This document shows positions 8,519 to 63,430 of a DNA stretch of 64,000 nt, in pieces. Where the stretch lies: sequence record MZ443771.1; one strand, 5' to 3'. The position numbers and the translations under genes were made by a program. Each line of letters opens with the position of its first letter. Position 1 is the stretch's first letter. The notes beneath the pieces were generated by a model. It saw only the letters and a list, made by a program, of their open reading frames with translations, was not told the origin of the DNA and did no database searches.

Positions 8519-8548
8519 TGTGTTCTCCGTTTACCAGAAGCGGTGATT

Positions 8549-8556
8549 AAAATTAT
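8549..8556 (-). promoter_or_regulatory. Putative late promoter motif (ATAATTTT)
   Basis: Recurrent (C/A)TAATTT(T/C) motif 31 nt upstream of 8518; overlaps a stop codon, so weaker evidence. Confidence 0.35.
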
Positions 8557-9248
8557 ACAGGGTCGCCTGACTTAGGACTGGTAGAGCCGTATTTAATACG
8601 GAATACATAGTCGAGACTATCGAACGGGAAGTCATTGCGATAGACAACATAATCAAAGCCACCGAGACTTACCTCCGCAGCGCCTTCAAAGTTGAAGTCG
8701 TTAAACTCCATAGCGCCGTCCCATGAGCCAGAGAACCCTTGAGCTGTCTCTTGGAAATATCCATAGAGTAAACGCTTAGGCCAGGCCACATAGAAGAAGC
8801 GATTGTTATCAGACGTTGATTCGTTTGGAGGACAAGTGATAAGCTGAGGACTCGACTCACCGAGAACGGTTGTCAGAGAACGGAAGAAGGTATCGTTGTA
8901 GTCCTGTAGCGATAGCACTTTATCGTGTACGCCAAATCGAGGACCGTATTCACCGCTGAATGGCACAGACACACGCACCTTGTTCGACGTGGCATTCAAT
9001 GTCGTGCTGACGTTGTACGCCTTAGCAACGAGATCGTGTTCACCTGTATCGAAAGGCAGAGTGAAGTCGAAGTATGCGCTGGTGCCAGTAGTCGGCATGT
9101 CAAGCGTCTTGAGTACCACACCCGCAGCGTTCTCAATCTGGAGTGTGCCACGCAAAGGCGGGTTATCCATAGCGACCAAGAAGCGCAGTTGTTTGCTACG
9201 CAGCGAGAAGCAGTATTCCAAGTTACCTTGAATAGACAAAGTAAGCAT
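8553..9248 (-). CDS. Fibre-tip-like protein sharing the C-terminal domain of the Ig-repeat protein
   Basis: 231 aa; FFYVAWPK, GSWDGA.EF.DFNF.G and YRNDFPFDSL are near-identical to the C-terminus of 3230..7240. Confidence 0.65.
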   Translation of the reverse strand: MLTLSIQGNLEYCFSLRSKQLRFLVAMDNPPLRGTLQIENAAGVVLKTLDMPTTGTSAYFDFTLPFDTGEHDLVAKAYNVSTTLNATSNKVRVSVPFSGEYGPRFGVHDKVLSLQDYNDTFFRSLTTVLGESSPQLITCPPNESTSDNNRFFYVAWPKRLLYGYFQETAQGFSGSWDGAMEFNDFNFEGAAEVSLGGFDYVVYRNDFPFDSLDYVFRIKYGSTSPKSGDPV

Positions 9249-19633: not shown

Positions 19634-19892
19634 CTCTATCCTCTAAAACAAATTGTAGTGTGCCCTGTATATTTACAGCATTCAGGCGCTTACCTGTCTG
19701 TGCAATCAGGCCATTCAACACGCCGATAAGATCAGCGCTGTAGCAGTTCTCAGCAATCTTGTGGACGTACATATCGTCAGGCACATCGCCTGGGTTAAGC
19801 TGCCAAGCAGTACGCAAGGCAGCTCCCATGAAGGCCGGACGCTCCACCAGATGCTTGTTCAAAAACGAACATACATCTTCGGCAGTTATCAT
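19599..19892 (-). CDS. Hypothetical protein
   Basis: 97 aa, coupled to the polymerase stop. Confidence 0.6.
   Translation of the reverse strand: MITAEDVCSFLNKHLVERPAFMGAALRTAWQLNPGDVPDDMYVHKIAENCYSADLIGVLNGLIAQTGKRLNAVNIQGTLQFVLEDRDEDLSITEEPR
19670..19678 (-). promoter_or_regulatory. Putative replication-class promoter motif (CTGTAAATA)
   Basis: 37 nt upstream of the clamp gene. Confidence 0.5.
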
Positions 19893-22800
19893 TTCTTCGT
19901 AATCCCCTTGAGCGCCAGTTTGAGCATCGACTTGCTGATTTTGATTTTCTTCTGAGGCGCAGCGCCACCAGCAGCGGCAGCCGCTTTCTTCGCTTTCTCC
20001 TCAGCTTCATACTTCTCGAACGTTTTAGTGTTCTCAGGAAGTTCAGCAAGCCACTCTTTGATGTTCTTCTTGTCTTTGTTGGTGAGAGGATTGACTTTGT
20101 CCATAGAACGAATTTTGATATCGTTCGCCCAAAGCTGTTTCTTCATCCACTCAGACATAAGATGGTACTGGTCTTCCATGATAGAGTCCAGCGTCTTATC
20201 GACGTCGAGGTCTGTCTCACCGAGTTCATCACGTTTAATCTCAAGGCCATCTTTGATGATCTTCTTGAGCTGCACGTAAGAGAAGTTCCAGCTCTGCACA
20301 TCTTTCTCGGACGCACCGATTTCAAAGTCGATTTCAGGCACGGACGTGAACTCAAACCCTGCATGACGTTTCTGTACGACTTCGACCACTGCGCTGGTCA
20401 TCGCACGTTCGATCATATCGAGCGCAAGGAAGATCCATTTGTAATCGCAGTCAACGGTCAAGGAGTCGTGTACCGATACGTTCATATCGAAGTCTGGGTA
20501 CTCGCCATTTGCTTTGAAGTATTCGTACTTCATGCGGTCAAGAATACGAATCGCACTCATCATCAGGTCAGAACCAAAGCCCTGAACTGGACTGTTTACC
20601 GCGCGACGATCACACGCAGCATGAACCATGTTGGCTTCTTTGTGTGACTCAGGCAGCATCAAGCCCCAGAGATGACGACGACGACCAACAGGCGATTCAA
20701 CAAAGAAGTTCTCATGTGCAAACTTCTTAATCTTGTCGAACCACTTCAAACCAACAGGGAATCGCGTAAGGAACTTGCCTTTGATTTCTGCAATCTCAGA
20801 CACTTCACGACCTGTAGACTTCGCAAGACCTTTATCACCCTGCTGATAAATCAAGCCGAAGATAACTGTCTTAACCGCGTTACGTACGGACTTGGTTACG
20901 TCCATTACGTTTGGAATGCCGAAGAAGTATGCGGCATTGATTTTGTGAACGTCACCCTCTGCTTCGACGCGGTGTTCGATCCACGGGTCAGGCACTGTAC
21001 GATAGCGATGACGCAACGCACGACCCTGTTCGAATACGTCAGCAACGCCCTGGTCACCAGAGATGATTGACCAACCACGAACTTCATGCGCTGAGTAGTC
21101 GACCTTGATAAGCAGGCGATTCTTACGCGCAATCAGAATACGTTTGATCAGTTTACCCATCTCACTACGTGACGGTACCTGTTGCAAGTTCGGGTCAGAC
21201 GCAGAAGTACGACCCGTTACAACGCCGAGATAGCCGTACGTTGGTCGAATGGATCTGTCGTGTTTGAAGTCTTCTGACTCGCCCCAGAGTTTAAGCAGGC
21301 TGTTAACGTAGGCGTTCTTGAGCTTGTACGCTTTTCCGAGCTTCGAGTAGAGAGCAACAAGCGGTATATCTGCATACGCCGCCTGGAAGTCTTTGTCGAG
21401 CTTGCCCGTCTTCTTACCGTTCTCACGTAACTGCTCCCCTTCTTTCAGAGGCTTGAGTTTCATCACATCGAAGAACAGGATTTGTTTATGCTCCGACTTC
21501 GACATATCGAACTTGGTGACCTCGACTTTGCCCATAAGACCCATCTTAGGAACATTGTCGTCTTTGCAGATCATCTTGTTCGCAGCCTTAACTTCAGGGC
21601 TGTTCATGAACTCACGCTCTACGTTTCGAATCTCCTCGTTGATTGGGGAGTTCGGAAGGTTGAGCTTAAACAGGTAGTCGATATCAGCGCCAGCACCTGT
21701 TGTCTCAAGTATCGAGAACGCATGAATCTGGTCTGAGATTTGTTCACTGACCATAGACTCATACTTACCGTACTTGATATCGTTCGCTCGAAGCATCTGC
21801 TTCTCTGCAATGCGGAACGGCACGATAACGTCGAGGCCAGCATACTCTTGCACGTTTTCATCAAGGTCAACGTCTGCAATCGTCGCTCGCATCTCTTTAC
21901 CGAACGATACTTCGTGATACACGGTACAACCGAACTGCATCGTCAGGTTCGCCAAGTTGTAGTAACCGTTACCGGTGACGTTCAACAACGACTTGGCGTT
22001 TTCATCAAAGGCAAACTCACCCGCCTGAATATCCCAAACGTTTGCTGCGTAACTACGAATGCCGAAGTTAGAGCGCATTACGTTCAGGTCGAACTTCGCG
22101 TTGGTATAGATTTGATACTTGTTCGTGTTCTCCTCAAAGAAGTCACGGAACAGTTCTTTCACCTTACGCAGTTCTTTCGGACTGAATGGGCTGTCTCTGT
22201 GATAGACAGGTATGACATACGCTTTCTTACCGTTGTCCGATAACTGCACCGTCAGAATCTTGTTCTTGATACGGTTCAGGTTCTCGGTTTCGGTATCGAC
22301 TGCAACCTTCTTGGAACGCTTCATACGCTTCAAGATTTTCTCAAGCTGCTTGACCTTCGTTACATACACGAGGTCCCAGTTACGCTTCTTACCGCACGTA
22401 ACTTCGTCGATCTTATAGCGCATTCCCTTGTTCAGCCACGGCAACATCCAACGTGCCATGTAACCCAGAGTGTACGATGAACCTGCAATGTGCATCGGGT
22501 TCAACACTGTGTGGTAGCTGACGTTCGGTAGATGAATGAAGCTGTGCTTCTTCCCATCGAACTTTAACTTCGTTGGGATTTCAACACCGTACCAGTGCTC
22601 GTAGTGCTCTTTCGAGAACTGGATCTTCTCGTTGTTCAACGCTTTGAACGGCGCTTTACCAAACGTCAGGACGTAATCAGGTTTATAGTCTACGATGATT
22701 TCTCGCAGACGATTGGCGAACGCGGCATCAGCATCTTCCTTGAACTGCTCACCCTTGTCATACGTCTTGAACATGTTATACGAGATAACAAGGAAGCTCC

Positions 22801-23062
22801 AGTCATCGAGAGTAGTCTTTGTCGGGAAGACGTCCTCAAGATACTGCATCTGGTTCAAGAACAACTCACCTTCTGTCGAGGTAAAGATTCTACCACTACG
22901 CAGGTCTTCTGTCGGCATATGATCAAGGACGAGTAGCGCTTTACCGCCTTTAGCGCTTTTGCTTACGCTTTTTAATAATCGAACACCGTCATAGGTCTGC
23001 ATGTCTGCAAACTGCTCTGGCGGGTCGAAGTCGAGTGAAATAAACTTGGGTTTGTTCACCAT
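19889..23062 (-). CDS. polA: Family A DNA polymerase with 3'-5' exonuclease and N-terminal UDG-like domain
   Basis: Exo motifs DTETE, NAKFD and YAGLD; pol motifs TGRTSASDPNLQQVP, DYSAHEVR, RNAVKTVIFGLIY and VHDS; N-terminal GRIFTSTEGELF and PDYVLTFGK resemble family-4 UDG. Confidence 0.95.
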   Translation of the reverse strand: MVNKPKFISLDFDPPEQFADMQTYDGVRLLKSVSKSAKGGKALLVLDHMPTEDLRSGRIFTSTEGELFLNQMQYLEDVFPTKTTLDDWSFLVISYNMFKTYDKGEQFKEDADAAFANRLREIIVDYKPDYVLTFGKAPFKALNNEKIQFSKEHYEHWYGVEIPTKLKFDGKKHSFIHLPNVSYHTVLNPMHIAGSSYTLGYMARWMLPWLNKGMRYKIDEVTCGKKRNWDLVYVTKVKQLEKILKRMKRSKKVAVDTETENLNRIKNKILTVQLSDNGKKAYVIPVYHRDSPFSPKELRKVKELFRDFFEENTNKYQIYTNAKFDLNVMRSNFGIRSYAANVWDIQAGEFAFDENAKSLLNVTGNGYYNLANLTMQFGCTVYHEVSFGKEMRATIADVDLDENVQEYAGLDVIVPFRIAEKQMLRANDIKYGKYESMVSEQISDQIHAFSILETTGAGADIDYLFKLNLPNSPINEEIRNVEREFMNSPEVKAANKMICKDDNVPKMGLMGKVEVTKFDMSKSEHKQILFFDVMKLKPLKEGEQLRENGKKTGKLDKDFQAAYADIPLVALYSKLGKAYKLKNAYVNSLLKLWGESEDFKHDRSIRPTYGYLGVVTGRTSASDPNLQQVPSRSEMGKLIKRILIARKNRLLIKVDYSAHEVRGWSIISGDQGVADVFEQGRALRHRYRTVPDPWIEHRVEAEGDVHKINAAYFFGIPNVMDVTKSVRNAVKTVIFGLIYQQGDKGLAKSTGREVSEIAEIKGKFLTRFPVGLKWFDKIKKFAHENFFVESPVGRRRHLWGLMLPESHKEANMVHAACDRRAVNSPVQGFGSDLMMSAIRILDRMKYEYFKANGEYPDFDMNVSVHDSLTVDCDYKWIFLALDMIERAMTSAVVEVVQKRHAGFEFTSVPEIDFEIGASEKDVQSWNFSYVQLKKIIKDGLEIKRDELGETDLDVDKTLDSIMEDQYHLMSEWMKKQLWANDIKIRSMDKVNPLTNKDKKNIKEWLAELPENTKTFEKYEAEEKAKKAAAAAGGAAPQKKIKISKSMLKLALKGITKK

Positions 23063-23097
23063 CTAGTCCTATCAGTGCGTCACATATTGATGGCTGT

Positions 23098-23106
23098 TAT
23101 TTACAG
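23098..23106 (-). promoter_or_regulatory. Putative replication-class promoter motif (CTGTAAATA)
   Basis: Between a terminator and the polA start, 36 nt upstream. Confidence 0.6.
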
Positions 23107-23118
23107 ATTCCGAAAAGC

Positions 23119-23145
23119 AAAAAGGGCAGCCGAAGCCACCCTTTT
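23119..23145 (-). terminator. Intrinsic terminator (GGGTGGC-TTCG-GCTGCCC)
   Basis: Stem-loop plus T-run after 23155..24177. Confidence 0.85.
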
Positions 23146-23154
23146 GGATTAAAT

Positions 23155-24177
23155 TTACAGAGCTTTAACGGCGTCGTAGAACGCTGCGTAAGCGTCGCTG
23201 TAGAGCGTAAAGTTGCCCAGCTGTTTGAATGCAGATTTAGGCAGATCGCTTGGAGCACCAGCAGTCGGATTGTACTTCGCAACAGTGAATGCGCCACGGC
23301 CACGAGCTTGCTTAATCTCACCAATCATGCCACCGGACGGACCAAGAACAATACCAATCTTCTTGGTTTCGCTCATGACGAAGATACAATCTTCTTCCCC
23401 GCCCATATTGGCAACAGAAGCAGTTACGCTCTTATTAGGCGCAGGCAGCTTCATCAGCTTGAATAGAGCCTTGACGTTTTCACCTTCTCCGCCACGCATG
23501 AGAGCATTGTAGAGATTGTCATAGGACTCAGAGCGAGCCTGATTACGCGCAACAGTCTTAGCGCCAGGAGTGCCGCCAGTCTGTTTCTGATTCGGGCTCT
23601 GCGTCCACGTCAGACCTTCATCCAGACAGTTCTGACCAGTCATCGCTTCCTGAATGATTACGCGCTTGTTTTTGCCTGTCTCAACATTCTTCTCAGCTTC
23701 GGTCTTGGTTTTGTACGGACCTTTGATGATAATGTCGTTGGCGTGACGAGTGTGATCGACAACGTACCACTTGTTGCGTTCGATCTTACCGTTCGCATCT
23801 ACCGTTTTAGCACTTACCGGACGTGACGTTTTAGCAGGAGCGTCTTGTCGAATAGCTACAGGCTTGATCTTGATTGCACGAAGACCGTTGATTGTAGCCA
23901 CCAGCGTTTTGGCTTTGTACAGGTTCTTCATCGCAGTGACAAGATTCTTGCCCGCAGCTTTCTTGGCCAGTGCGGTAGTAGCATCGGCATCGTTCAGCAG
24001 GTCGAGAACAGCAGCTAGCTTTGCAGTGTCCAGCTCTTTGATCTTAACCAGCTCATCGATCTTCTTAACGATAAGTTTTGCGTTCTTACCGAAGAGAATC
24101 TCGGCATTAGCCAGTTGCTTTTTGTTAGCAGCGGAGATTGATACCACCGTGCCTGAATCAAGGGTAATGTCGAACAT
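23155..24177 (-). CDS. Basic Lys/Ala-rich hypothetical protein (possible internal head protein)
   Basis: 340 aa; N-terminal VVSISAA resembles the S-x-S tag. Confidence 0.5.
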   Translation of the reverse strand: MFDITLDSGTVVSISAANKKQLANAEILFGKNAKLIVKKIDELVKIKELDTAKLAAVLDLLNDADATTALAKKAAGKNLVTAMKNLYKAKTLVATINGLRAIKIKPVAIRQDAPAKTSRPVSAKTVDANGKIERNKWYVVDHTRHANDIIIKGPYKTKTEAEKNVETGKNKRVIIQEAMTGQNCLDEGLTWTQSPNQKQTGGTPGAKTVARNQARSESYDNLYNALMRGGEGENVKALFKLMKLPAPNKSVTASVANMGGEEDCIFVMSETKKIGIVLGPSGGMIGEIKQARGRGAFTVAKYNPTAGAPSDLPKSAFKQLGNFTLYSDAYAAFYDAVKAL

Positions 24178-24186
24178 TGTCGTTCC

Positions 24187-24732
24187 TTATCGTTTCTTGG
24201 TCCAGTTGTTCTGCGGCTTAGGCTGCTCGACAGTCTCAGGCGAAGTGTTCTCCTCAGAGATTTCTTCTTCCTCGTCTTCGTCTTCAACCTCATCGGCCGC
24301 AGGCTCAGGAGCCTGATTGGTATTGAGTACGGACGCTGCGATAGGTGCTTGTGCTACAGTGTTTACAGTAGCGACAGGTTCAGCAGCAGCCGCTTCACGC
24401 GCTTTGGCGACTTCACCAACAGCGTGTTCGTGCACCTTATCAGTAGTAAGCAGAGCGCCTTTCTCTTTTAAAATAGCATCTGCTTTCTCTTGATCCCACT
24501 GGTCCCACAGGATATCAAGACCCTTGAATGCGTAGTTCATGCCTTTCGGCAGCTTGCCACGGCCATTGAAAGGCAGACCGTTTGAAGGAGTAGCTGGCTC
24601 GAACTCGTCCATCATCTCCCACTTACGTTTTGCTTCAATGCACTTCGGTCCCCACACACCATCACACTGACCGTCGTACAGACCAAGCAGAGTCATGATG
24701 ACTTGGAGCTTCTGATAGAATTTGTTCAGCAT
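24187..24732 (-). CDS. Peptidoglycan-binding-domain protein with an acidic low-complexity tail
   Basis: LQVIMTLLGLYDGQCDGVWGPKCIEA is a PG_binding_1-type signature. Confidence 0.65.
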   Translation of the reverse strand: MLNKFYQKLQVIMTLLGLYDGQCDGVWGPKCIEAKRKWEMMDEFEPATPSNGLPFNGRGKLPKGMNYAFKGLDILWDQWDQEKADAILKEKGALLTTDKVHEHAVGEVAKAREAAAAEPVATVNTVAQAPIAASVLNTNQAPEPAADEVEDEDEEEEISEENTSPETVEQPKPQNNWTKKR

Positions 24733-24748
24733 AGCGAGTCCTCTTACG

Positions 24749-24769
24749 AAAGGAGGGGCCGAAGCCCCT
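24749..24769 (-). terminator. Intrinsic terminator-like hairpin
   Basis: AAGGGC-TTCG-GCCCCT followed by CCTTT after the SNF2 stop. Confidence 0.6.
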
Positions 24770-24775
24770 TACCTT

Positions 24776-27700
24776 TTAGACTGATTTGTTTTTCGACATG
24801 GTGAGTTTCAGCTTGTCGAGCGCAGTGGTCACACGTTTGATGTTCGTGATTGTGTAGCCAGCTTTCACGATCTTGTTGATGCGTGATTTCGCAGTAGCGA
24901 CATTCTTCACGAACCCAATCCACATACCTGGCGCCTGGTCGAACGTACCGAACTTACGAGTGTTCGGAATCTTCGTGCCAACAAAGCGTTTCATTTTCGG
25001 GTTGGTCTTGAGGTCAAACATGATACGCAGTCGATCTTCCATAACCATTGGGTATGCCTTGATGTGGTTCTTATCAGAGGCAGACTTATGCTTAACGAGG
25101 AAGAACTTCGGCAACTGCTCTTGACCCTTCGTGGCCAGCTTAACGTTGAAGCCCATGCGCGGCGTTGACTCGTCGAAGAAGTCCAGAACAAACTCCAGAC
25201 GCTTCTCGGACATACGGTCGAACGACAGCTTTTTCTTGACCTCGATGAAGTCAAGCAGTGCTTCGAAGTCAGCGTAGTAGGCGCAGTCGTAATAGACGTA
25301 ATCGCCGAACTCCACGAAGTCGAACTCTTTGAGCGCCTTAGCATCAGGGTCAGTTGCATCAGCGTACAGAGCAACGAATCCGTTGTACACTGTAGGCGTC
25401 AGCTCCAGAGCCATGTCACTACCAGTCGCTTCTGCCACGGCTTTCGCTCCAGGCTTCATGCGAGTAGTTGTGTTTGCCAGAGGAGGCAGGTCAGCGGCCT
25501 TACGACGGCGAACTTTCTTGGCAGCTTCTTCAACACCTTCGTTGATTGGCTTACCTTCTTCCTTGTTCTGCTTACGCTGGGCAACACGCGCAGCTTTACG
25601 CGCTTGCGCTTCGACCTTCTTCTCAGTCTCTTTGGTATCTGCTGTCTGCGTTTCGTCGAGAACGGTGTCTTCAACTTCAACACGGTTCGCTTCGGCATTA
25701 GCACGTTTGCGGTCTTTCTCATTCGCCCACGGCTTACGCTGTTCGAAGAAACGTTTCAGGTCAGCTTTATCCACCTTCGTTGCGATGTGAACTTTCGTCG
25801 CAGGAATAGAGACAGTCTCACCAGTTCCGGCCAGACGTACACGCACAGTGCTGATTGGACTATCTGCACGGAGCTTACCGTCAACCATACGAGCAGTGAC
25901 AGACACGATCAGACCGTTACCGTATTCAGTAACTACTGGCGCACGATTCAGAGAGTCTTTCAGATTCTCACCGCTTGCGAAGTTGCGGTTACGTGCCCAA
26001 TCCAGAATACGCTCCAGACCCCAGCCATGACGATCAGGAATCTTCTGGTTCGCTACGAACGGAGTCTGCTCCATCACGCGGAAGTCATTCAGAGCAGGCG
26101 TAGACGGCAGCGCTTGCATTGCTGCAACCGTTGTGCGACGCATCTCTTGGAACTCCTGCGATTCGATTTCGTTCAGATCACGTTTCGCCAAGAAGTACGG
26201 CTCGAAGTCTTTCATCGTGTTGTTATCAAGCAGGAGCGATGGGCTCATCTTGATCGGGTCCAGCTTATACTGGTCGAGTGCTTCGTAACGCTTGTTGCCC
26301 TTCTCATCGAAGCGCGTCTTCTCAAGCGTCTTCCACATCAGACGAGCGACCTTACCAACTTCCAAGGTCTTGTTCGTCATTACCCAGTCGATGAAGACAA
26401 CTTCACGAGCCATGTCGCCTGGCTTACCGTTCTCGTCCAGCTTCGCAGCAGCAACGTCAGGACGGAAGATACGCGCAGTAGACTGATCGTATGTGCCCGG
26501 TGACCACGGAGTATCGCAGCGGATGATACGGCTACCCATCTGCATGTTGTGGCCTTCGGAGATCGCTTGTTCGTTCGCAATCAGAATCTGAACGTTCGGG
26601 TCAGTTTTGAATGCGTCGAGGTTAGCGTCTTTGTTCTGGCCGAGCTTACCGACTTCACCATGATACACTACAGCGACTTTCTTATAGTTCGCTGGCAGCG
26701 CATTGTAGATCGCGTTTGCAGCACGGACGTAGCGCGTGAACACAATCAGTTTGCCCTGCACTTCCGGTTTCCAGTAGTCTGGATCATCCGGCGGCGGAGT
26801 CATTGAAGGCGGCAGGTCTTGACGCTGGAACTCTTCGGACTGCTTACGTGCCAGATACTTCTGTCCGTTGTAGACAGCGATATCCAATTCACGAGGCTGC
26901 ACACCCGGTTTCCATTCGAAGATCTGTTGCTCTTTAACCATAATGTCACGTTCAGGTTGCACTTCGAAGTGCTTCTTGATACGGTCGATAATGGTCAGCA
27001 CTTTGGCCGAAACGAAGTTGTTAACGCCAGCAGCTTCAAACGTCAGACGAGCAACGTCATCACCCATTGGGTCAGTCAGCATCATCTCCATACGCTGGAA
27101 GTACATGTTCAGGTCTGCGTTGCCCGCAAGCAGTGCGCCTAAATCATCGCCTTCTTCGATATCATCTTCGTCTATATCGGTCGCGTTCTCGTTGTCACCG
27201 CCACCAGTTTCATCGTCCTCGTCATCAGATGACTTAGACTTCTTGGCGTTTCGTGCGGCTTCGTCGAGTTTCTCCAGCACTTCTGCGTACATTGCGTTGT
27301 ACACTTCTTGGTGCAGAGCAGAGTTCGGAACTGACGGGTCATCGATCTCAACCTGAATGAAGGTATCAATCGGGTTCGGCAGCATGAACGCCCAGTGCTT
27401 ACGCTTGAACGAGATGAACGCTGTATGGTTTGCCATACGTGAGTGCGCACGACGAATCATTTCGATATCGTCTTTCGCGCCGTCATACGCAACATCCAGT
27501 GAGTCACCGAACATCGCAGGCGTCATCAGTGCAGCCTGACCAACGATATCACGCACACGGTCAGTTACCAGCGTACCAGTAGCGATACGAGCATAGCGAA
27601 CAGACGGAGCAGTGAAGACCGCTTTGGTGTTGAAGTGAACCTGAGAGCCAGCCTGACCGCCAGAGAAGTTCTTCACTTTGTGAGACTCATCGAGCAGCAC

Positions 27701-48232: not shown

Positions 48233-48552
48233 TCCACCGTATCGAGAAGTTGTGCTGTGAACTCACGCAGGCGCGCTTCGAGAAACTTACCAGTCTCTGG
48301 ATGACAGATGAGCTGGTCGTTTTTCAGATAGACACGATTCGACGGTCTAAGCACTTTGCGCTTTTTAGGATTCATGCGCAGCGCTTGATGCACCGGTGTT
48401 GCGTAGAAGTCTTCTTCGACTTCATCCATGCAGTTCACATTGAACACCACTTCGTACTTCGCAAACAAATGCAGGTTACGCGTGATAGTGCCCATGTCTA
48501 TTGGTACGCTGTGCTTCTCATGATCGCGATTAAGCTGTCCGAAGATCATCAC
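48229..48552 (-). CDS. Hypothetical protein
   Basis: 107 aa, overlaps the sbcC stop. Confidence 0.6.
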   Translation of the reverse strand: MMIFGQLNRDHEKHSVPIDMGTITRNLHLFAKYEVVFNVNCMDEVEEDFYATPVHQALRMNPKKRKVLRPSNRVYLKNDQLICHPETGKFLEARLREFTAQLLDTVE

Positions 48553-50879
48553 ATCACCTTACGTGTTAATACGGACGTGCCGTTCTTCTTGGTCACTGTC
48601 CATTGATTATCTGAGAAGTGCTCGACACCGTTAGGCGTTATCCAGTAAACGTTCGGGATAATCTGCTTGAGTATCGGCAGGAAGTTATTGACGATGTGCT
48701 CACTTACTGCTGGGCTGCAACTGTTATCAGGTTCGTCCAGAACGATGAAGTTAGTACGACGACCAGCTGGGATGAACGGCATGATCGCAACAGCAAACAA
48801 CAGGCGGAAGCAGTTAGTCTCTGCACCACTCATGATTGCAATGTCTGTGGTCTTCTTAGAAGTCACACGCGTAACAGTCGCACCAACACCCTGCTTGGTA
48901 GTAAACAGTTGGAAGCGCATAGGCTCAGGGAACACAAGGCCGCTGTACTCATTCAGCTTCGCTTCAATCTGCTGCAATCGACCTTCAACTGCTTTCAGCT
49001 TGAGTGCGTTGTTGCTGTATGCTTTGTACAGGACTTCGAATACCTTACGCTTATCAATCATCGGCTGGAGCTTGGCCAACTTGGTACGCAGTTCACGCAG
49101 CGTTTCCTCGTAGTGCTCATGCTCCTGAATACGCATCTGAATGCCCTGAGCTTTGCGATCTTTCTTCTCGATATCCGTGATGAGCTTGTTGAGTTCCTTC
49201 TCAATCTTTTTGTATCGACCATCGAGAACGTAGAACGGGTCTTCAGGTTCGCCTACAGCTTTCAGCGCAGAGGTCAGGTCTTTCAGAATCTCAAGATCCT
49301 TGATACGGTTCTTGATCGTCTTACGAGCTTTCTTCGGCTGCTTAACCGCTTTAGGTTTCTTGAGAGCGTCACGCTTCGCCACCAGCTTCTCATACTTCTT
49401 CGCTGCTTCGAATTGTTCTTCCATCGTATCGAGTTTCTTCCCGATAGACTTCAACTGCTTCTCAAGTTCTTTGCGGTCATGCTTAGGCTTCTTCACCTTG
49501 TTGTCTTTCAACGCGGTGAGTTCTGCATTCAGTTTGTGGTAGTCAATCGCTTCGATACACTCATCAATGATTGCCTGAGCTTTCGTTGCAGCGCGTGACA
49601 TAGCTTTCAAGTCAACGTCTTGTCCGCAGGTAGGGCAAGAGTTACCGTCATGGTCGTGCTCCTCAAACGCACGATACGCCTGAACTATCGCTTTGGATTC
49701 TGCTCGGGCATCTTGTGCCTCTTCCTGAGTTCGTTTAGGAGCTTTGAGCTTAGACAGCTTTTTACTGAGCTTGTCAACTGCTTCTCGCCAGTCGTCGTAT
49801 TCTTCTTGTTGCTCATCAACTTTCTCCAACAGCTCCTGCAGGCTCTCTTCTTCCTTGACCAAAGCGCTGTGCTTCTTACGCAGCTTTTTGTTGTCGAGGT
49901 CGGCAACATCGCCGAGAGCTTTGATTTTCTTTTTGACCGATGCAAGTTCTGCTTCGTATTCTTCGAGGTCAGACACGTACTCATCGTAACGGTCAAACTC
50001 CACCAGCATACCACGAAGGTTATTCAGTTCACCTTTCGGATCGTCAGACTCAATGCCGAGCGTATCGAGCTGGTGCTTGAGCTTTTCGTACTTACGCGCA
50101 GACGAACGAGCAGAGCCGAGATCAATCAACTCTTCACCTAAACGGTTACGGCGTTTCTTCAACTTGTCCGACTGTTCGATGATGGCTGCAAGCGTATTCT
50201 TTTCCTGAGCGTGAATGTCCAGCGCGTTCTGTTTACGCTGCGTCACGTCAAGCATATCAGCCAAGCCTTTAGATTCTGTCTCTGCTTCTTTCGCAAGGTC
50301 CAGTTTCTTTTTCAGCGCGATACGGATGTTATCGAACACATCAAGGCCGAATAGGTTTGTCAGATACTTGAGTCGATCAGCAGGTGACGAACGCTGGAAC
50401 GGATGTTCAATCTGCGACTGAATGTAGCAGTAGCTATAGAACTCCTCACGCGTTAATGGCCAGTGCTTAGTCACCCAAGAACGTGCAACGTCCTGACGAT
50501 CTACTTTCTGGTCTTCACCGTTGTAGTAAACTTTGTACTTGGTCTTCGTCTGCACGATGCGAACGATGCCACCAAGAGGTGAGTGCCACGACAGGTCAAT
50601 CGAGCTATCCTTGCCGAGCATGTTACCCTTGTCTTTCTTTTTCAGAGCAAGCGGGTCTGCTTCATACAGCAATGTTGGGATAGCACCGAACAGGAGGCTT
50701 TTGCCTACACCATTCGTGTTGTCTTTGACGTTTGGACTATCGAGGTTCTTACCACAAATAGTTGCGAAGCCTTCACTGTCCAGTGTGTCGATATCAAGCT
50801 CTTTGTACACGCCAACATCGCGGAGATGAATCTCTTTCAGGCCGATGCCGTGGTTATGTTTCTGCTTCGCTTTGCCCAT
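48549..50879 (-). CDS. sbcC: SbcC/Rad50/gp46-type ABC ATPase
   Basis: Walker A NGVGKS, long coiled coil with CPTCG zinc hook, signature MSGAE, Walker B VLDEP. Confidence 0.92.
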   Translation of the reverse strand: MGKAKQKHNHGIGLKEIHLRDVGVYKELDIDTLDSEGFATICGKNLDSPNVKDNTNGVGKSLLFGAIPTLLYEADPLALKKKDKGNMLGKDSSIDLSWHSPLGGIVRIVQTKTKYKVYYNGEDQKVDRQDVARSWVTKHWPLTREEFYSYCYIQSQIEHPFQRSSPADRLKYLTNLFGLDVFDNIRIALKKKLDLAKEAETESKGLADMLDVTQRKQNALDIHAQEKNTLAAIIEQSDKLKKRRNRLGEELIDLGSARSSARKYEKLKHQLDTLGIESDDPKGELNNLRGMLVEFDRYDEYVSDLEEYEAELASVKKKIKALGDVADLDNKKLRKKHSALVKEEESLQELLEKVDEQQEEYDDWREAVDKLSKKLSKLKAPKRTQEEAQDARAESKAIVQAYRAFEEHDHDGNSCPTCGQDVDLKAMSRAATKAQAIIDECIEAIDYHKLNAELTALKDNKVKKPKHDRKELEKQLKSIGKKLDTMEEQFEAAKKYEKLVAKRDALKKPKAVKQPKKARKTIKNRIKDLEILKDLTSALKAVGEPEDPFYVLDGRYKKIEKELNKLITDIEKKDRKAQGIQMRIQEHEHYEETLRELRTKLAKLQPMIDKRKVFEVLYKAYSNNALKLKAVEGRLQQIEAKLNEYSGLVFPEPMRFQLFTTKQGVGATVTRVTSKKTTDIAIMSGAETNCFRLLFAVAIMPFIPAGRRTNFIVLDEPDNSCSPAVSEHIVNNFLPILKQIIPNVYWITPNGVEHFSDNQWTVTKKNGTSVLTRKVM

Positions 50880-53090: not shown

Positions 53091-54365
53091 TTACTTTTTC
53101 TTCTTTTTCTTTTTAGGCTTTTCGTCTTCATCGTCGTTGCCTAAATCAACCACCAGCTTGCCACTATAGATATCAGACATGGTTCTGGTGATGCAGGTTT
53201 CGAGCATGATATCTGCCGGTACGGAAGTTGAGTTGAATGCAACCTCTGCGTCTGCTAATGCTGATTGCAAATACACCAGACTGACCAGATTGACTTTGAT
53301 GTTGTCTTTCTTGGTCATATTCATGAACATCTTGAGGCCAGCAGACTGCCACTTGTTCGTCTCGGCGTAATGCCCCAGCACACCGTGAATAATCCAACGA
53401 GCTTTCGCTACGATGCCGCGCGGGTTGTTTGCTTCACGCAGGAACTGAATCACACCAATCAGGTCCATCGAGAGATAAGCACCAATCGTCTGAACCGCTT
53501 TCGCTTCCATGTCGATTTCTGGATCAGCAGCAGCGAGTTCGGCAACGAGGTTCTTATCGAAGTCTTCGCCACCTTTAACAGACGAGTAGATGTTTTGCAG
53601 CATGGTGATTGCACCACGCATCTGACCACCAGCATACTCTGCAACCTGATGCAGTGCCGCTTCTGCTTTATCACGAGCCTTGTCTTTCTTCGGCAGGATA
53701 TCCAGCTTGCCGCTAATCTCTACCAGACGTTTGTGAATCACGTCAGTAGGAATAGGTCTGATTGGCAATTGGGTCATGCGACTGATCATGGTGTTCTTCA
53801 TCTTCTCAGGGTTCGTCGTTACGAAGATGAAGACAACGTGCGCTGGTGGCTGTTCGGTAATCTTGAGTAGCTTAGATTCAGCAGCACTGGACATGAGGTG
53901 CGATTCATCGAAGATGAAGATGCGGCGTTTGAACATCGGGCTTAACGGTGCACTGTCCACGATCTTCTGTGAGCCGTCAACTTTACCTGCATCGCCACCC
54001 ATGTCAAACTCTTGCACGTCCATGTGTGAACCCAAGTCCATCAGTTCACACGAACGACATTTACCACACGCGTTGAACGTGTCGCAGTTGATGTACTTCG
54101 CCACCAGACGTGCGAACGTTGTTTTACCGCTGCCGAGGTGGCCGGTGATAATCATCGTTGACGGAATCGTCTTCGACTTCTGCCAGCCTTTCATGATCTT
54201 GACGATGTGGTCTTGGCCAACATAGTCTTCGATACGCTTCGGTCGGAACTGGTCTGCGAAGTTAACTGTGGTTAGCTCTACAGACTCGGAAGAACCGCTT
54301 TTCTTCTTCGACGGTTTCCCATCGTCAAAGCTACGCTTCTTCTTTTTCTTTTCTTCTTTAGCCAT
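53091..54365 (-). CDS. dnaX: Clamp loader, DNA polymerase III gamma/tau type
   Basis: FRPKRIEDYVGQDHIV, GHLGSGKTT, C....CGKCRSC zinc module, FDESH and SAAESKLLKITE. Confidence 0.92.
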   Translation of the reverse strand: MAKEEKKKKKRSFDDGKPSKKKSGSSESVELTTVNFADQFRPKRIEDYVGQDHIVKIMKGWQKSKTIPSTMIITGHLGSGKTTFARLVAKYINCDTFNACGKCRSCELMDLGSHMDVQEFDMGGDAGKVDGSQKIVDSAPLSPMFKRRIFIFDESHLMSSAAESKLLKITEQPPAHVVFIFVTTNPEKMKNTMISRMTQLPIRPIPTDVIHKRLVEISGKLDILPKKDKARDKAEAALHQVAEYAGGQMRGAITMLQNIYSSVKGGEDFDKNLVAELAAADPEIDMEAKAVQTIGAYLSMDLIGVIQFLREANNPRGIVAKARWIIHGVLGHYAETNKWQSAGLKMFMNMTKKDNIKVNLVSLVYLQSALADAEVAFNSTSVPADIMLETCITRTMSDIYSGKLVVDLGNDDEDEKPKKKKKKK

Positions 54366-54794: not shown

Positions 54795-55135
54795 CTTAAA
54801 ACTCCAATAGGCTCTCAGTCGAAAACTTATTGGAGTCCACCCTGACAAGATGACGGTCCTGTCAAGGTTTTCTCCCCGTGCTATTCAATGCACCAGCACG
54901 GTAGCGCTCGCGGTCTTACGCCCTTTGTGGCAGCGAACATTTCGGCAGGTAGCGTGGTTCGCAGCCCTAGGCAGCCGCTTTCGGCCATTAGCGATAACGC
55001 GGTGTTACGCTACTTGGCCTAGGGTGACTCTGGGCCGAGTCTGTACAAAAAAGAGTTCGGCCTATCCCCAAATTCGGCAAAAGAAATAAGCCGAACTAAA
55101 CAGTCAGCGCAAACTCCGTATGCACTGTTTTGTAC
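54795..55135 (-). ncRNA. Putative structured non-coding RNA (or structured ssDNA element), about 340 nt
   Basis: Gene-free gap with at least 8 stem-loops; CTAATTTA at 55141-55148 upstream and a terminator-like final hairpin; strand inferred only from the promoter motif. Confidence 0.55.
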
Positions 55136-55175
55136 TGTCATAAATTAGAAACATCCTGTAATATTCAGACAATTC

Positions 55176-59099: not shown

Positions 59100-59627
59100 T
59101 CAATCAGGTTTTTCAAGTTGCCTCTGGATCTCCCACGATATGAACTCACCAAAAGAATTGAAACCATCTTTAGCAAGCTCGGCATCGTAGTCATCCATAT
59201 CCGAGCCATTAGAAAAATACTCATCGAAATGATGATCATAGTTCTGTAACGTCGGGCGTCTCAACGGATGACCTTTAGGCAACACATCGCACAGGTAGCA
59301 GCAAACCAAAAACACGTCATAGGTTTTCAGCTTACGTTTAGCCGCGCACTGCTTTTGCATTTGGTCGTAGATAGCGAGATAGGTCTTCTCGTACTTTTTC
59401 TTTTTGTCGAAAAATCTGGTCAGCAACAGGTTAACGTATTTCGCATCAAGGGAGACATGCAGCAGGTGCTCAACAATACGTTGCCTATCGAACGCAGTCA
59501 GCTTATCCAGATTAGGTTTTTCCCTCATGTACTCTTTATAGCCTGATGTGTCTCGCAACACTGTCTCAAGTTTCGCAGCAATGCGGATGCACCTATCTAC
59601 ATTGGGCTGCTTCAACTTTGGCATCAA
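59100..59627 (-). CDS. Hypothetical protein
   Basis: 175 aa, coupled. Confidence 0.6.
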   Translation of the reverse strand: MMPKLKQPNVDRCIRIAAKLETVLRDTSGYKEYMREKPNLDKLTAFDRQRIVEHLLHVSLDAKYVNLLLTRFFDKKKKYEKTYLAIYDQMQKQCAAKRKLKTYDVFLVCCYLCDVLPKGHPLRRPTLQNYDHHFDEYFSNGSDMDDYDAELAKDGFNSFGEFISWEIQRQLEKPD

Positions 59628-61273
59628 TCATCTCCCATAAAATCGAGGGTATCAGAGAATTTCTTAATGACGAATCTCGCCTTCGCTGATTGAACGTCAC
59701 CCTTAGATTTCAACAGGGCACCGTCGTGTTCGAGCGAGTAGACGATCTCAACATTACCGTTTAGAATCGCTTCAAACAAATGATTCGACTCTATGCCAGA
59801 TATGCAATGACTCATGGTTCTTCGTCGTACCTTGCGCGACGAAATACATTGGTCACGTTCGAGAACATACTTGGCCCCAGTCTCACACGTCAGCATCATC
59901 CCTTCGGATGTGTAGCGAAAACGCTTCGAGTAAATTTCACATAGCTGCTGGAGCGCACTGATAAAGTGGCGGCAGTCTATGTTCCACGACTCAACGAAGT
60001 CATACACCTCACTAAGATTTTTGAAGTGAGGGCGAAGCGCCATAACAGCACTAGACTTCGGACTTTTCGCTAACGTGTCCGCGCTAAACAGCGTACCGTA
60101 GAAACAGATTTTCACCAGCTTCTTCGACAGTCGCATGTTGTTCGGGTTAGCTTTCTGGAGCTTGTCTACAATGTCATTTACAGTATGCACATCGTCAAGG
60201 AAAGGACATTCGATGCCGTTGTCTGCAAACTCTTTACGGATGATGTTGAGCTGGCTGCTCTCCATATCCCAGTTTTCACCGACAACGCTACACGCTTGTT
60301 TAAGAACAGCAGGGAAGGATTGGAAACCACCACCCTGCTCAAACAGACGACCACCAACTCGCGCAATAGTGTATGCTGGGTAGTATCTGATTATCAGAGG
60401 TTCTTCGGACACAATCTGAATTGGCCCTGACAGAATAGCCTGTAGACAGCTCATCACCTGATGATATTGCTTGAGGGCTTTTCTCGTTCCCCTGAAACTC
60501 TTAACAGTCAAATAGTCCAAGATAGGGTCAATAGCAATTTCATTCGGCCCTATCTTTTTCAACACAGCGGTGTATAGCTTACGCGCAGCACGATCTCGAT
60601 TAGAGTTCAGACCGTATCGCGCATTTCCGCCTGACAGATCGTGCTTACGAGGCTTGAATGGTTTGTTAGCACTCGCGCTTATCATCTCAAGGATAGTTTG
60701 CCCGAACCTCTCTTGCACCGCTTTGAGCGGACTATAGAGTCGGGTGAGTTCGAGAATCTCTCGACTCGACTTAGGGCGATTAGGGTACATCGCGTCTAAG
60801 CACTTTCGCTTGATACGAAATTCACGACAACGCCCCGGACTTGTCGGCGTCTTCTTACGATAACGCTTATAGTCCATGACATTTGCGATTAGCCACTCAA
60901 GGGCCCTGCTGAAATGTTTCTCAGTTCGTTCCCACTTAGGCCCTACTGGACCGCGTAGAGTGTTTTCACATCCGAATACCATCGGAAGCTCTTTAACGCC
61001 GAGCTTTCTGCTAAACGGAACCCAGACGGCACCAAACTTCTCAAATTTCTTTCGTTTTGTCGGATATATCGACGATTGAAGCACATGCCAGAAAAATAAG
61101 TTAATCTGCCGTCGATATTCAGCCTCATGCTTTTCCGGTCCATCGTACGGGCATTTCTCAACGACGTTATCGCGTACCCACACAAGAGGTTCTAATTCCT
61201 GGTAGGTAGGGTTGCGCGTCAAGACGGCTTTGCCTTTTTTCATAAAAGAAGACATTCGGATCTCCTGAATCAC
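59624..61273 (-). CDS. Divergent family-A-polymerase-like protein without an exonuclease domain
   Basis: GGRL....GFQ, WDMESSQLNII (motif A-like), KLVKICFYGTLF (motif B-like) and SLEHDGALL (motif C-like), in the correct order. Confidence 0.55.
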   Translation of the reverse strand: MIQEIRMSSFMKKGKAVLTRNPTYQELEPLVWVRDNVVEKCPYDGPEKHEAEYRRQINLFFWHVLQSSIYPTKRKKFEKFGAVWVPFSRKLGVKELPMVFGCENTLRGPVGPKWERTEKHFSRALEWLIANVMDYKRYRKKTPTSPGRCREFRIKRKCLDAMYPNRPKSSREILELTRLYSPLKAVQERFGQTILEMISASANKPFKPRKHDLSGGNARYGLNSNRDRAARKLYTAVLKKIGPNEIAIDPILDYLTVKSFRGTRKALKQYHQVMSCLQAILSGPIQIVSEEPLIIRYYPAYTIARVGGRLFEQGGGFQSFPAVLKQACSVVGENWDMESSQLNIIRKEFADNGIECPFLDDVHTVNDIVDKLQKANPNNMRLSKKLVKICFYGTLFSADTLAKSPKSSAVMALRPHFKNLSEVYDFVESWNIDCRHFISALQQLCEIYSKRFRYTSEGMMLTCETGAKYVLERDQCISSRKVRRRTMSHCISGIESNHLFEAILNGNVEIVYSLEHDGALLKSKGDVQSAKARFVIKKFSDTLDFMGDD

Positions 61274-61297
61274 TTCTTTTCTTCGTTTTCTTCTTGT

Positions 61298-61306
61298 TGT
61301 TTACAG
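61298..61306 (-). promoter_or_regulatory. Putative replication-class promoter motif (CTGTAAACA)
   Basis: 25 nt upstream of 61273. Confidence 0.5.
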
Positions 61307-61649
61307 AAACCTCATGCGCTTGCATGGCGATACAAGGCAGGTAGAAGAACAAGCAACGCTGGGCGATCGAGCGGCGCGCTCAAGGCACGGGATATACACA
61401 TACAGCTAGGGGCTTTAGGCGCACTCCGTTTTTGAGATATCAAAAGGGTGAAACCATCGCTATATGCTGTATAACCCATGTCCTACACGCCCGTACATGC
61501 TCATAGGGACGATCTCAATTTTCAAAAAGATCTCCCCGAAACCATGTAAATTTTTTTAAATTTGGGTGAGATTTCTGTCCATTTTTTAACCAAACCACTA
61601 AAAACAGAGGAAAAACCCGAATAAAATCAAGGACTTTCCCCTTTTTCAG

Positions 61650-62309
61650 TTACTTTTTCTGCGAAACACGCTTCCCGAGCTTAACGCCGATTTGAGTCAT
61701 GATGCGTTTGACAGTCTCCCCGTCGTGCTCCGCCATTGCACTCGCTAAACGTTCGCCCTGTTCACGCGATAGCTCTGGCATAATCATTTTCAGCATCTGT
61801 GAGCGCATCTTAGCTGATTTAGAGCGTCCTTTCGAGACAGACACGCCTTCATTCACCTTGAGCGCATTGCTAATCGCTTTCTGCACACGACGATCACCGA
61901 AGATATCGCCGAATACGTCACCGAACAGGTCTTTGAACGACATACCGCCGCCCATGATATCGTCTTTCGTGAAACGAACTTGCTGTCCGAGAGCGTTTGT
62001 CTTCGTGCAGTGCGTGGATTCAACTTCGTTCGTTGTGCGTCCACCAGCACGGAAGTTCTCGTCAGGACGTGACGCTTTGCCTTCTGCGCCCGGCTTCGTG
62101 TTGCCATTACGCAGATCTGCATCACCTTCAACAGCTTTATCCGGGTCGAACATGTCGTCCGCTTTTGCGCTTTGATTCGCATCAAACGGAATCTTACCTG
62201 TCAGCTTGTTTGGGTCTGGCCAACTGTCCGGGATATCAGACGCAGGTTGTGGTTTGTTCGTCATATCACCGTTAGCTTCGCTGCTCAAGCTGATCTTAAT
62301 ACGTGCCAT
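61650..62309 (-). CDS. Hypothetical protein with tag-like N-terminus (RIKISLS)
   Basis: 219 aa; low-complexity N-terminal half and helical C-terminus; AGGAG RBS. Confidence 0.6.
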   Translation of the reverse strand: MARIKISLSSEANGDMTNKPQPASDIPDSWPDPNKLTGKIPFDANQSAKADDMFDPDKAVEGDADLRNGNTKPGAEGKASRPDENFRAGGRTTNEVESTHCTKTNALGQQVRFTKDDIMGGGMSFKDLFGDVFGDIFGDRRVQKAISNALKVNEGVSVSKGRSKSAKMRSQMLKMIMPELSREQGERLASAMAEHDGETVKRIMTQIGVKLGKRVSQKK

Positions 62310-62320
62310 TGTCTTTTCTC

Positions 62321-63430
62321 CTATCGGATCTTAAAGCCATTGAAAATGTTGTACGCAACTTCTTTGCGCTGTACGGGACGTGTGGTACACACCCATTCCC
62401 ATTGTTCGTTTCGTGCTGTGCGCTTCTTAGGCGCTTCCATAACTTTCAGCACATAGTTTTTGAACGGCAGAACGAGAATGTCTTCTGGTTCTAACGGACC
62501 TGAGCGAGCTGGCAGCACGACCGTGATGTTACCAACAGTCAGCTCCTGATCGTAGTTCAACACGTTCGCTTCTTCGCTGATGTTGCCCTTAACAGGCGGC
62601 ACACCCAAGTCGAAGACGAGCGTACAATGCGTGAATGCCTCAATGCCTTTCACACGCAGCGTAACGTGTTTGCCTCGCCACGGTTCAAGGTTTGCTGCTG
62701 TCAGTTCGACTTCAACGCCGTTCAGCACAAGCATAGGGCGTGGAAACGCAGGTAACATTGATTCGTTCAGACGTACCGAATATGTCGCCTGAGTAAAGTA
62801 TTTTGGGATAAGCTGATCGAAATCCACGTAACTGTCTTTGCGCTGCTGTCTGAAAGTTGCAGGGCTGGTGGATTGATCGAGCGTGTAGCCTGATGCGTTT
62901 TGAATGTGATGGTGAGTCACCACGTTGTAGATATAGCCTGTGCTAATAAACCCAGGCACAACGCCCTGCCGATAGCAGATGCCGCAGTTCGCAACGTTAC
63001 CACCATCCCACTTGACGTCGAACTCTTCGCCTGTGTCGATACCCATCAGGTCGGCAGCGTCCATTGCAGCGTTCATACCGTCGTCGATATCATCGAGGGT
63101 AACTACTTGGCGTCCACCACCAAACATACCTTTCGAGACAGTGCCGATCTTAACGCCGCCGTCCATAGAACTGGATTCGCGTCCGAGTGATTTGAGCGCA
63201 CCGTCTTGGTTATCGAAGATATCGTTTTCAACTTTGTTGCAGCTACAGGTGAGGCCCATCTTCGCCTTTTTAAAGATGACGATATCGGTGGCGTCCACCT
63301 CAAGGGCCTGTTCGACTTTCGACTTCACAACCTCTTGGATTGAGTTCAGGCGTTTCTGCACTCGCTCCGTTTCGTAGGTTTTGTGCCTGTCGTATTTATT
63401 TCGCTGTTTTCCGCGTTCGATCCAGCTCAT
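62321..63430 (-). CDS. Putative neck/virion protein with a CxC...CxxC zinc module
   Basis: GLTCSC...CGICYRQG; behind CTAATTTC at 63452-63459. Confidence 0.45.
   Translation of the reverse strand: MSWIERGKQRNKYDRHKTYETERVQKRLNSIQEVVKSKVEQALEVDATDIVIFKKAKMGLTCSCNKVENDIFDNQDGALKSLGRESSSMDGGVKIGTVSKGMFGGGRQVVTLDDIDDGMNAAMDAADLMGIDTGEEFDVKWDGGNVANCGICYRQGVVPGFISTGYIYNVVTHHHIQNASGYTLDQSTSPATFRQQRKDSYVDFDQLIPKYFTQATYSVRLNESMLPAFPRPMLVLNGVEVELTAANLEPWRGKHVTLRVKGIEAFTHCTLVFDLGVPPVKGNISEEANVLNYDQELTVGNITVVLPARSGPLEPEDILVLPFKNYVLKVMEAPKKRTARNEQWEWVCTTRPVQRKEVAYNIFNGFKIR

Follow-up and report, generated by a model that had tools for sequence, protein, structure and literature searches.

The window analyzed here, a stretch of 64,000 nucleotides (nt), is 100% identical by megablast to Erwinia phage pEa_SNUABM_20 (MZ443771.1, 265,871 bp, genus Alexandravirus), and its coordinates equal those of the record minus 124,000. 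In addition to a complete PolA (19889-23062, minus strand; identified by way of its 1057-aa homologue in G001, a near-identical record), it carries a gene for a second, highly divergent polymerase that resembles family A and lacks an exonuclease, an assignment proposed in a preliminary description of the sequence and on which predicted fold, profile-profile alignment, and residue conservation agree. Nearly all genes in this part of the phage lie on the minus strand, and the open reading frame (ORF) reported at 59624..61273(-) proved to be real. Its likely start is the ATG at 61255, which follows an AGGAG sequence, coincides with the start in GenBank, and gives a product of 543 amino acids (aa); the GTG at 61273, from which the preliminary description had read a 549-aa version, is an in-frame alternative start further upstream. 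Residues are numbered here from the 543-aa protein, and adding 6 gives the numbering of the 549-aa version. Against the homologues in pEa_SNUABM_17 and _22, the gene shows a nonsynonymous divergence (dN) of 0.04 and a synonymous divergence (dS) of about 1.0 (dN/dS about 0.04), and it is under strong purifying selection. The features of the locus are collected in Table 1.

Table 1. Features of the polymerase locus in window coordinates.
Feature	Position	Strand	Basis or remark
Predicted TV-Pol-type polymerase gene, 543 aa (QZE56755.1, 'hypothetical protein')	59624..61255	-	ORF and GenBank
Shine-Dalgarno sequence AGGAG	61262..61266	-	7 nt upstream of ATG 61255
Basic N-terminal domain, aa 1-200	60656..61255	-	Core at aa ~16-160 resembles an extended winged helix
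Short thumb, aa 222-275	60431..60592	-	Antiparallel helices 242-255 and 258-275; DSSP of the AlphaFold2 model
Beta-hairpin with invariant Arg and Q/K motif (YTIARVGGRLFEQGGGFQSFPAVLK)	60299..60373	-	Equivalent of Pol I TGRLSS..PNLQNIP; hhalign and conservation
Motif A (ENWDMESSQLNII)	60239..60277	-	hhalign, strand 327-331, conservation
Motif B/O-helix (KKLVKICFYGTLFSA), K382 Y386 F390	60080..60124	-	Aligned to Pol I R..K...FG..YG
QG-type helix (HCISGIES)	59786..59809	-	Family consensus LQGxEA, equivalent to Pol I PIQGSAAD; hhalign
Motif C (VYSLEHDGAL), D511 as putative second catalytic Asp at the beta-hairpin turn	59714..59743	-	Strands 502-508 and 512-517
C-terminal K531-x-F and disordered acidic/aromatic tail (KKFSDTLDFMGDD)	59627..59665	-	Homologue alignment, AlphaFold2 pLDDT
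Promoter-like box (CTGTAAACA)	61298..61306	-	42 nt before the polymerase ATG; box class of PolA and clamp loader
Conserved non-coding gap	61307..61649	-	Upstream gene's terminator-like hairpin, invariant TTTACA box, CGCCTAAAG block
Downstream 174-aa ORF	59100..59624	-	ATG overlaps the polymerase stop (TGATG)

No Pfam family matches the 543-aa protein even at E ≤ 10, NCBIfam and PADLOC returned nothing meaningful, and the only match in PHROGs is phrog_30690, of 'unknown function'. Searches of PDB sequences with the protein, a narrow profile, and a wide profile found no polymerase, the sole hint being Pol gamma at E 0.92. Likewise, none of 84 sampled relatives has a Pfam match to PF00476, to another family of polymerases, or to any further family of relevance; the PolA of the phage, tested on G001, does match PF00476. 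Homologues occur in 52 GenBank records of Erwinia, Dickeya, and Yersinia jumbo phages, all annotated as 'hypothetical protein', and the nearest clusters in a protein atlas are unnamed and of mixed phage and bacterial origin, with DNA_pol_A at a score of 0.77 serving as a lead only.

The predicted structure places the protein among the right-handed polymerases. An AlphaFold2 model built from 24 homologues of 35-94% identity was confident (predicted local distance difference test (pLDDT) 87.4, predicted template modeling score (pTM) 0.83), and the 50 PDB matches listed by Foldseek were exclusively family-A DNA polymerases (Taq, Bst, Pol theta, the apicoplast polymerase, and Klenow; E ~5e-5, probability 1.0), so that the right-hand palm fold, on which the earlier assignment stood or fell, is present. 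Across searches, the PDB structural matches, among those listed, comprised family-A polymerases together with T7-like RNA polymerases (RNAPs) only. In BFVD, the own family of the protein was followed by proteins of Erwinia phage Yoloswag and uncultured phages and by 'DNA replication' proteins of virophages and giant viruses (Zamilon, Qinghai Lake virophage, and Pyramimonas orientalis virus), and then by PolA proteins. TV-Pol domains, introduced below, are reported in such virophage and giant-virus replication proteins.

The motifs of family A were recovered in order when the 84-member family profile was aligned by hhalign to a Pol I alignment made of six bacterial polA loci and the phage's own PolA (E 0.0018, 202 columns); alignment of the wide profile to a single PolA sequence had no success, the match appearing only against this small alignment. 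The four motif pairs noted by eye in the preliminary description (GGRL..GFQ, motif A, KICFYGTLF, and EHDG) were thereby reproduced. In the first, GGRLFEQGGGFQSFP pairs with TGRLSSSNPNLQNIP, that is, GGRL..GFQ..P with TGRLSS..PNLQNIP of Pol I, and R303, which aligns to the Arg of the Pol I TGR, sits between strands 295-297 and 304-306 of the model. In motif A, SQLNII pairs with IELRIL, so that Q335 falls on the steric-gate Glu (Glu710 of Pol I), as had been read, and D330, five residues earlier, is the motif A Asp. The O-helix segment K378..K382ICFY386G..F390S pairs with R..K..NFG..YG, and H510-D511-G512 pairs with H-D-E, with Gly in place of Glu883. An L-Q/S-G-x-E helix at 483-490 adds a fifth family-A motif, missed by the preliminary description. 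In the AlphaFold2 model, strand 327-331 closes with D330, and the turn of hairpin 502-517 holds D511, positions that fit canonical palm geometry as far as a predicted structure can tell.

Conservation over the 84 diverse relatives, which are 16-55% identical to the query, singles out the same residues. R303 is found in 84/84, Q312 in 82/84, and K319 in 80/84; in motif A, D330 is invariant (84/84), N328 is kept in 82/84, and position 335 is Gln in 75/84 and His in 8/84. The O-helix has K382 in every relative (84/84), Y386 in 57/84, and Phe, Met, or Tyr at 390, and position 379, a Lys in the phage protein, is Asp in 41/84. In the QG helix, G487 and E489 are invariant (84/84 each), whereas position 486 is Gln in 75/84 and Ser in the phage protein. 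D511 and G512 are each present in 83/84 relatives and H510 in 75/84. Both metal-binding Asp residues are thus retained, and their conservation among homologues, a check named beforehand, holds in the sample with one exception at D511. The agreement of the motifs is far beyond chance. The spacings between motifs, 52 aa from Asp to Lys and 181 from Asp to Asp, resemble those of Pol I rather than T7 RNAP, the corresponding distances being 53 in Escherichia coli Pol I for Asp to Lys and, for Asp to Asp, 177 in Pol I and 275 in T7 RNAP.

The enzyme might conceivably be a catalytically dead polymerase fold kept for DNA binding or scaffolding, a suggestion that the loss of the Pol I Glu883 and Arg754 equivalents would favor, but little or no variation is seen, in relatives down to 16% identity, at the metal Asp pair, the Lys of the O-helix, or the Arg of the hairpin, which is hard to explain without catalysis and makes this reading barely credible.

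Outside the polymerase domain lie about the first 200 residues and not 280, as had been thought: structural alignments to Pol I begin at aa ~197-213, and the region from ~200 to 290 belongs to thumb and palm. The basic character described for the N-terminal 280 aa was borne out (pI 10.1, 55 Lys and Arg against 26 Asp and Glu), whereas its description as unrecognised applies only in part. The N-terminal domain gives no exonuclease match, in agreement with the earlier statement that the polymerase has no exonuclease domain, and its conserved elements include FFWH (54-57) and CREFR (143-147), the latter on a beta-hairpin 'wing'; the model weakly suggests a winged-helix-like fold. The two thumb helices stand directly before the Arg hairpin in the model, and the fingers domain is of Pol I size. 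At the other end, pLDDT drops below 50 at aa 537-543, and K531 is kept in 77/84 relatives. The tail (aa 531-543) is acidic with one conserved aromatic residue, and relatives end in ..DFMGDD, DFLDEE, or DFVEDDE. It recalls the acidic docking tails at the C-termini of SSB and of T7 gp2.5 and gp4 and is a possible docking peptide.

The protein belongs to an already described clade, which the preliminary description had not recognised. Iyer, Abhiman, and Aravind (2008; PMC2579912) defined TV-Pol as a minimal relative of family-A DNA polymerases as well as of T7-like RNAPs, with a two-helix thumb, an Arg hairpin, a palm of the RNA recognition motif (RRM) type with two Asp residues, and helix-turn-helix fingers with a conserved Asp and RxxxK. 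According to the same study, TV-Pols are never linked to nucleases and occur standalone, fused to a D5 helicase, or with an N-terminal domain, TV-PolN; forms with TV-PolN sit in elements with a resolvase, integrase, or transposase, one of them inserted in Microcystis phage Ma-LMM01, and KilA-C/ANT genes and type I restriction-modification (R-M) systems are among the contexts described (PMC2579912). In the Erwinia phage protein, the two antiparallel thumb helices (242-255 and 258-275) are seen in the AlphaFold2 model, and the Arg hairpin (R303), the RRM palm with its two Asp residues (D330 and D511), and the lack of a nuclease, fused or adjacent, are all found, with no nuclease families among the neighbors. 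Compared with family A (PF00476), the right-hand fold and motifs A, B, and C in order are present, but neither the steric-gate Glu (Q335) nor the HDE form of motif C (HDG) is, and T7-like RNAPs (PF00940) are matched neither at the family level nor by a specificity loop or a Tyr at the Y639 position.

A link to TV-Pol is provided by Ma-LMM01, in which the wide profile finds exactly one ORF, MAP_030 (E 5.6e-40), also found by a narrow, phage-only profile (E 2.2e-5). By hhalign, the phage protein matches MAP_030 with 86.5% probability (E 4.6e-6, 307 columns), the alignment covering the 'CR..RI' hairpin of the N-domain, the GR..E.GGG.Q hairpin, NYD/NWD, and HDGAL; similarity to a named member is thus found via MAP_030, with the identity of the latter and the protein of the 2008 study deduced from two IS-type transposase genes that it directly adjoins (record 22746-26129). 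An exhaustive profile search over 1.84 billion representatives further delineated the family, which comprises 391 clusters at 50% identity with E ≤ 1e-3 and 152 with E ≤ 1e-10, most members having 450-600 aa and matching profile positions ~240-495, and which is spread over phages and cyanobacterial and other mobile elements. A genome scan, seeded with a smaller alignment as the 41-sequence alignment was too diverse as a seed, located bacterial members in Nostoc, Calothrix, SAR324, Rhodothermaceae, and Labilithrix. Further members are carried by small plasmids of cyanobacteria (Calothrix, Synechocystis). A central member from Nostoc-type elements matches the Erwinia phage proteins directly (tblastn, 1e-7), the relative in Nostoc sp. 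UHCC 0251 (6076-8623) adjoins a KilA-C/ANT (AntA antirepressor-like) gene, and that in Labilithrix lies near a type I R-M system. Because of the match to MAP_030, the tblastn link, and the mobile-element contexts of its relatives, we file the phage polymerase, on sequence grounds, under the N-domain type of TV-Pol, and its N-terminal domain is probably an accessory domain of the TV-PolN type. We regard it as very probable that the protein is a polymerase of the TV-Pol type whose active site is intact. The clade has a signature of its own, made up of a steric-gate Gln, the HDG form of motif C, and a basic N-terminal domain that is conserved.

The phage enzyme shares with TV-Pols a length of 400-600 aa, a minimal polymerase domain with an extra N-terminal domain and without a nuclease, the conserved fingers Lys, and relatives in cyanobacterial and other mobile elements that adjoin transposase or KilA-C genes. 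It differs from them in several respects. Its gene belongs to the stable, syntenic core of a lineage of jumbo phages (Alexandravirus, Y3-like, Dickeya JA/AD1-like, and Yersinia fHe-Yen9-02) in which PolA, a DnaB-like helicase, and a Toprim protein are encoded as well; no D5 helicase, resolvase, or transposase is linked to it; the RxxxK Arg is not conserved; and the N-terminal domain has an alpha/beta, winged-helix-like appearance, in contrast to the all-helical fold predicted for TV-PolN. With family A (Pol I, T7 DNA polymerase, Pol nu, and Pol theta) identity is only ~10%, there is no PF00476 match, the exonuclease is absent, the thumb is short, and Glu710 and Glu883 are replaced by Gln and Gly, respectively. 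T7-like RNAPs (T7, N4, and mitochondrial) share the superfamily fold, likewise have a small residue after the HD of motif C, and carry an accessory N-terminal domain ahead of the thumb.

CcPol-MP of SCCmec, a truncated family-A-type polymerase included in TV-Pol by Iyer et al., offers a functional comparison (PMC7581432; PMC2579912). As described by Bebel et al. (2020; PMC7581432) and Rice (2022; bioRxiv 10.1101/2022.12.02.518924), it is a primase-polymerase using dNTPs, which extends primers and, with the small DNA-binding partner MP, starts DNA chains, and it also has terminal transferase activity (PMC7581432). Both systems have a small gene directly after the polymerase, here with a TGATG overlap, and a DNA-binding module on the N-terminal side. 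However, CcPol can be recognised from its sequence as Pol I, retains part of a 3'-5' exonuclease fold along with the residues that discriminate against ribonucleotides, and needs the oligonucleotide/oligosaccharide-binding (OB)-fold protein MP to prime. The phage protein, by contrast, is matched by no PolA model, its gate residue is Gln, and it brings an N-terminal domain of its own; the CcPol-MP lineage is much closer to Pol I than N-domain TV-Pols are. The phage ORF downstream of the polymerase evolves very fast and corresponds to MP in gene position. To our knowledge, CcPol-MP is the sole TV-Pol that has been studied biochemically. Full-text literature searches found no description of TV-Pols in jumbo phages and no biochemistry of N-domain TV-Pols, and a 2024 survey of phage DNA polymerases gives TV-Pol only a passing mention.

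The genomic setting connects the gene with replication. In addition to PolA, the window contains a clamp loader (53091-54365) and an SbcC-like gene (48549-50879), and G001 encodes a DnaB-type helicase and a 355-aa Toprim (DnaG-like) protein a few kb past the window end. Upstream of the polymerase lies a box of the class CTGTAAAYA (extended consensus TCTGTAAATAMC), which has 11 copies in the window, all of them on the coding (minus) strand, against 0.79 expected, a 14-fold excess that 0/100 shuffles reached; the sites are at 13830, 19670, 23098, 24360, 32291, 39637, 42171, 51313, 54402, 54746, and 61298. The box mostly stands 25-42 nt before start codons (PolA, 35 nt; clamp loader, 36 nt; polymerase, 42 nt), which supports the 'replication-class promoter' of the preliminary description and suggests, from sequence, that the polymerase is co-expressed with replisome genes. 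CTGTAAAYA resembles TAAATA, the core of T4 late promoters, and here precedes replication genes.

Synteny holds across 16 related phage loci, in which a 369-aa gene, a 219-aa gene, a gap of ~400 nt, the polymerase, and a small ORF follow one another. The genes for the 219-aa (phrog_31583) and 369-aa (phrog_21298) proteins (61650-63430, minus strand) precede the gap in every related phage examined and form a conserved block with the polymerase. The gap, described earlier as AT-rich, adjoins the gene and has a GC content of 43% overall (61274-61649) and 35% within 61500-61649. Several blocks in it are conserved across phage lineages, namely a terminator-like hairpin, TTTACA, and CGCCTAAAG. The gap may encode a separate abundant or stable RNA (a non-coding RNA or an antisense or leader RNA); it has no Rfam match, the covariation term in RNAalifold was negligible for four close gap sequences, no similarity was found to the other large gap (54795-55148), and a sigma70 scan predicted no promoter in it. 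TTTACA was rejected as a repeated promoter, having a single occurrence in the window. In two wastewater metatranscriptome runs of one study, contigs cover only 61144-61663 of the interval 59100-61700, with 0-6 mismatches, unlike a DNA run, which covers the whole interval evenly.

Downstream, the 174-aa ORF keeps its position while its sequence is hypervariable: between pEa_SNUABM_20 and _17 it is 27% identical (E 0.012), whereas the polymerases are 94% identical, and only the first ~25 and last ~15 residues are similar in some lineages. Its conservation therefore gives no support to a conserved MP-like partner. In phages of the Dickeya JA type, this slot is occupied by a gene of 356-385 aa.

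These data can be combined in a model in which the polymerase would be an active, proofreading-free nucleic-acid polymerase of the TV-Pol clade. The basic N-terminal domain, possibly winged-helix-like, would most likely hold DNA, the beta-hairpin would present Arg303 to the primer/template, Asp330 and Asp511 of the palm would bind the two catalytic metals, and Lys382, Tyr386, and Phe390 of the O-helix would bind the incoming nucleotide. Made together with replisome genes, the enzyme would act in phage DNA replication or repair as a primase-polymerase, starting or restarting DNA chains, probably with dNTPs, and passing them to the processive PolA; the N-terminal domain could provide in cis what MP provides in trans for CcPol. 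The proposal of a primase-polymerase draws on the contextual prediction of this function for TV-Pols (PMC2579912) and on the activity of CcPol-MP. As a whole, an active TV-Pol primase-polymerase serving phage replication is, in our assessment, narrowly the favored account; taken separately, a job in priming or short-patch DNA synthesis during replication seems plausible, at slightly less than an even prospect. As regards the substrate, the isosteric replacement of the gate Glu by Gln335 and the DNA polymerase-like residues Tyr386 and Phe390 would favor dNTPs, while the lost Glu883 equivalent looks RNAP-like. Since a Toprim primase and PolA are present too, the enzyme is more likely to have an auxiliary role in restart, origin-specific initiation, or repair than to be the main replicase.

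Several points weigh against this account. The identification of MAP_030 as the TV-Pol named in 2008 follows from its transposase neighbors and hence rests on context. The Arg position of RxxxK is Lys or Arg in only 32/84 relatives, with Lys378 in the phage protein. Given the changes of Glu883 to Gly and of the gate Glu to Gln, substrate choice cannot be read from the residues. With a DnaB-type helicase and a Toprim protein in G001 and PolA in the window, a second primase is not obviously needed. Moreover, the primase prediction for TV-Pols rested on contexts with a D5-type helicase, resolvase, or transposase, and none of these, nor an integrase, is linked to the phage gene, the annotated genes within 12 kb on either side all being 'hypothetical'; such linkage is a contextual and not a structural trait. 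Primase-polymerase function is something that we infer for N-domain TV-Pols, the phage protein included.

Among other explanations, the one that survives best is a primer-dependent, error-prone gap-filling or translesion polymerase, a recombination or repair helper like Pol nu or Pol theta that does no priming. We consider it unlikely, as family-A repair polymerases have nothing comparable to the conserved basic N-terminal domain, TV-Pols are predicted primase-polymerases, and nothing ties the gene to damage. Rather less probable is that the enzyme initiates chains alone at specific DNA, either as the smallest single-subunit RNAP, serving a phage promoter class or origin R-loops, or as a family-A-type DNA primase firing at a site in the adjacent gap, alongside the DnaG-type primase that the phage has as well. 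A minimal single-subunit RNAP in general, transcribing some phage genes or making RNA primers or R-loops at an origin, would accord with the RNAP-like motif C but not with the Pol I-like spacings, and is decidedly improbable; in G001, no T7-like RNAP, beta', or sigma region 2 was detectable, a weak negative given that the PF00940 control gave no signal. Very improbable is a template-independent nucleotidyltransferase or a polymerase directed against host defense through decoy or signal synthesis: CcPol-MP does show terminal transferase activity (PMC7581432), and the adjacent downstream gene is hypervariable, as counter-defense genes often are, but the template and primer contacts of family A are all conserved (R303, Q312, and the QG helix), PADLOC gives no match, and the CTGTAAAYA signal is common with replication genes. 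Of the three functions that the preliminary description had offered, the primase-like one therefore agrees with the TV-Pol prediction and with CcPol-MP, a small RNAP is disfavored, and a nucleotidyltransferase is without specific support.

TV-Pols were defined in 2008 by sequence analysis as the minimal core of the Pol I/T7 RNA polymerase superfamily (PMC2579912), yet they are absent from Pfam, NCBIfam, and PADLOC and form only an unnamed family in PHROGs. At about 391 clusters (50% identity), this is a large clade. More than 50 entries annotated as 'hypothetical protein' in phage records can be renamed. The jumbo-phage lineage infecting Erwinia, Dickeya, and Yersinia keeps a TV-Pol-type enzyme under strong selection beside a complete replisome. 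Since phages of this kind can be propagated and genetically modified on Erwinia amylovora, two matters become directly testable: the prediction that N-domain TV-Pols are primase-polymerases, and the reason for which a phage should need another polymerase that lacks proofreading. If the enzyme proved to be self-initiating, the 'ancestral' primase-polymerase postulated by Iyer et al. for the Pol I/T7 RNAP superfamily would have a living representative in a phage-host pair that can be cultured.

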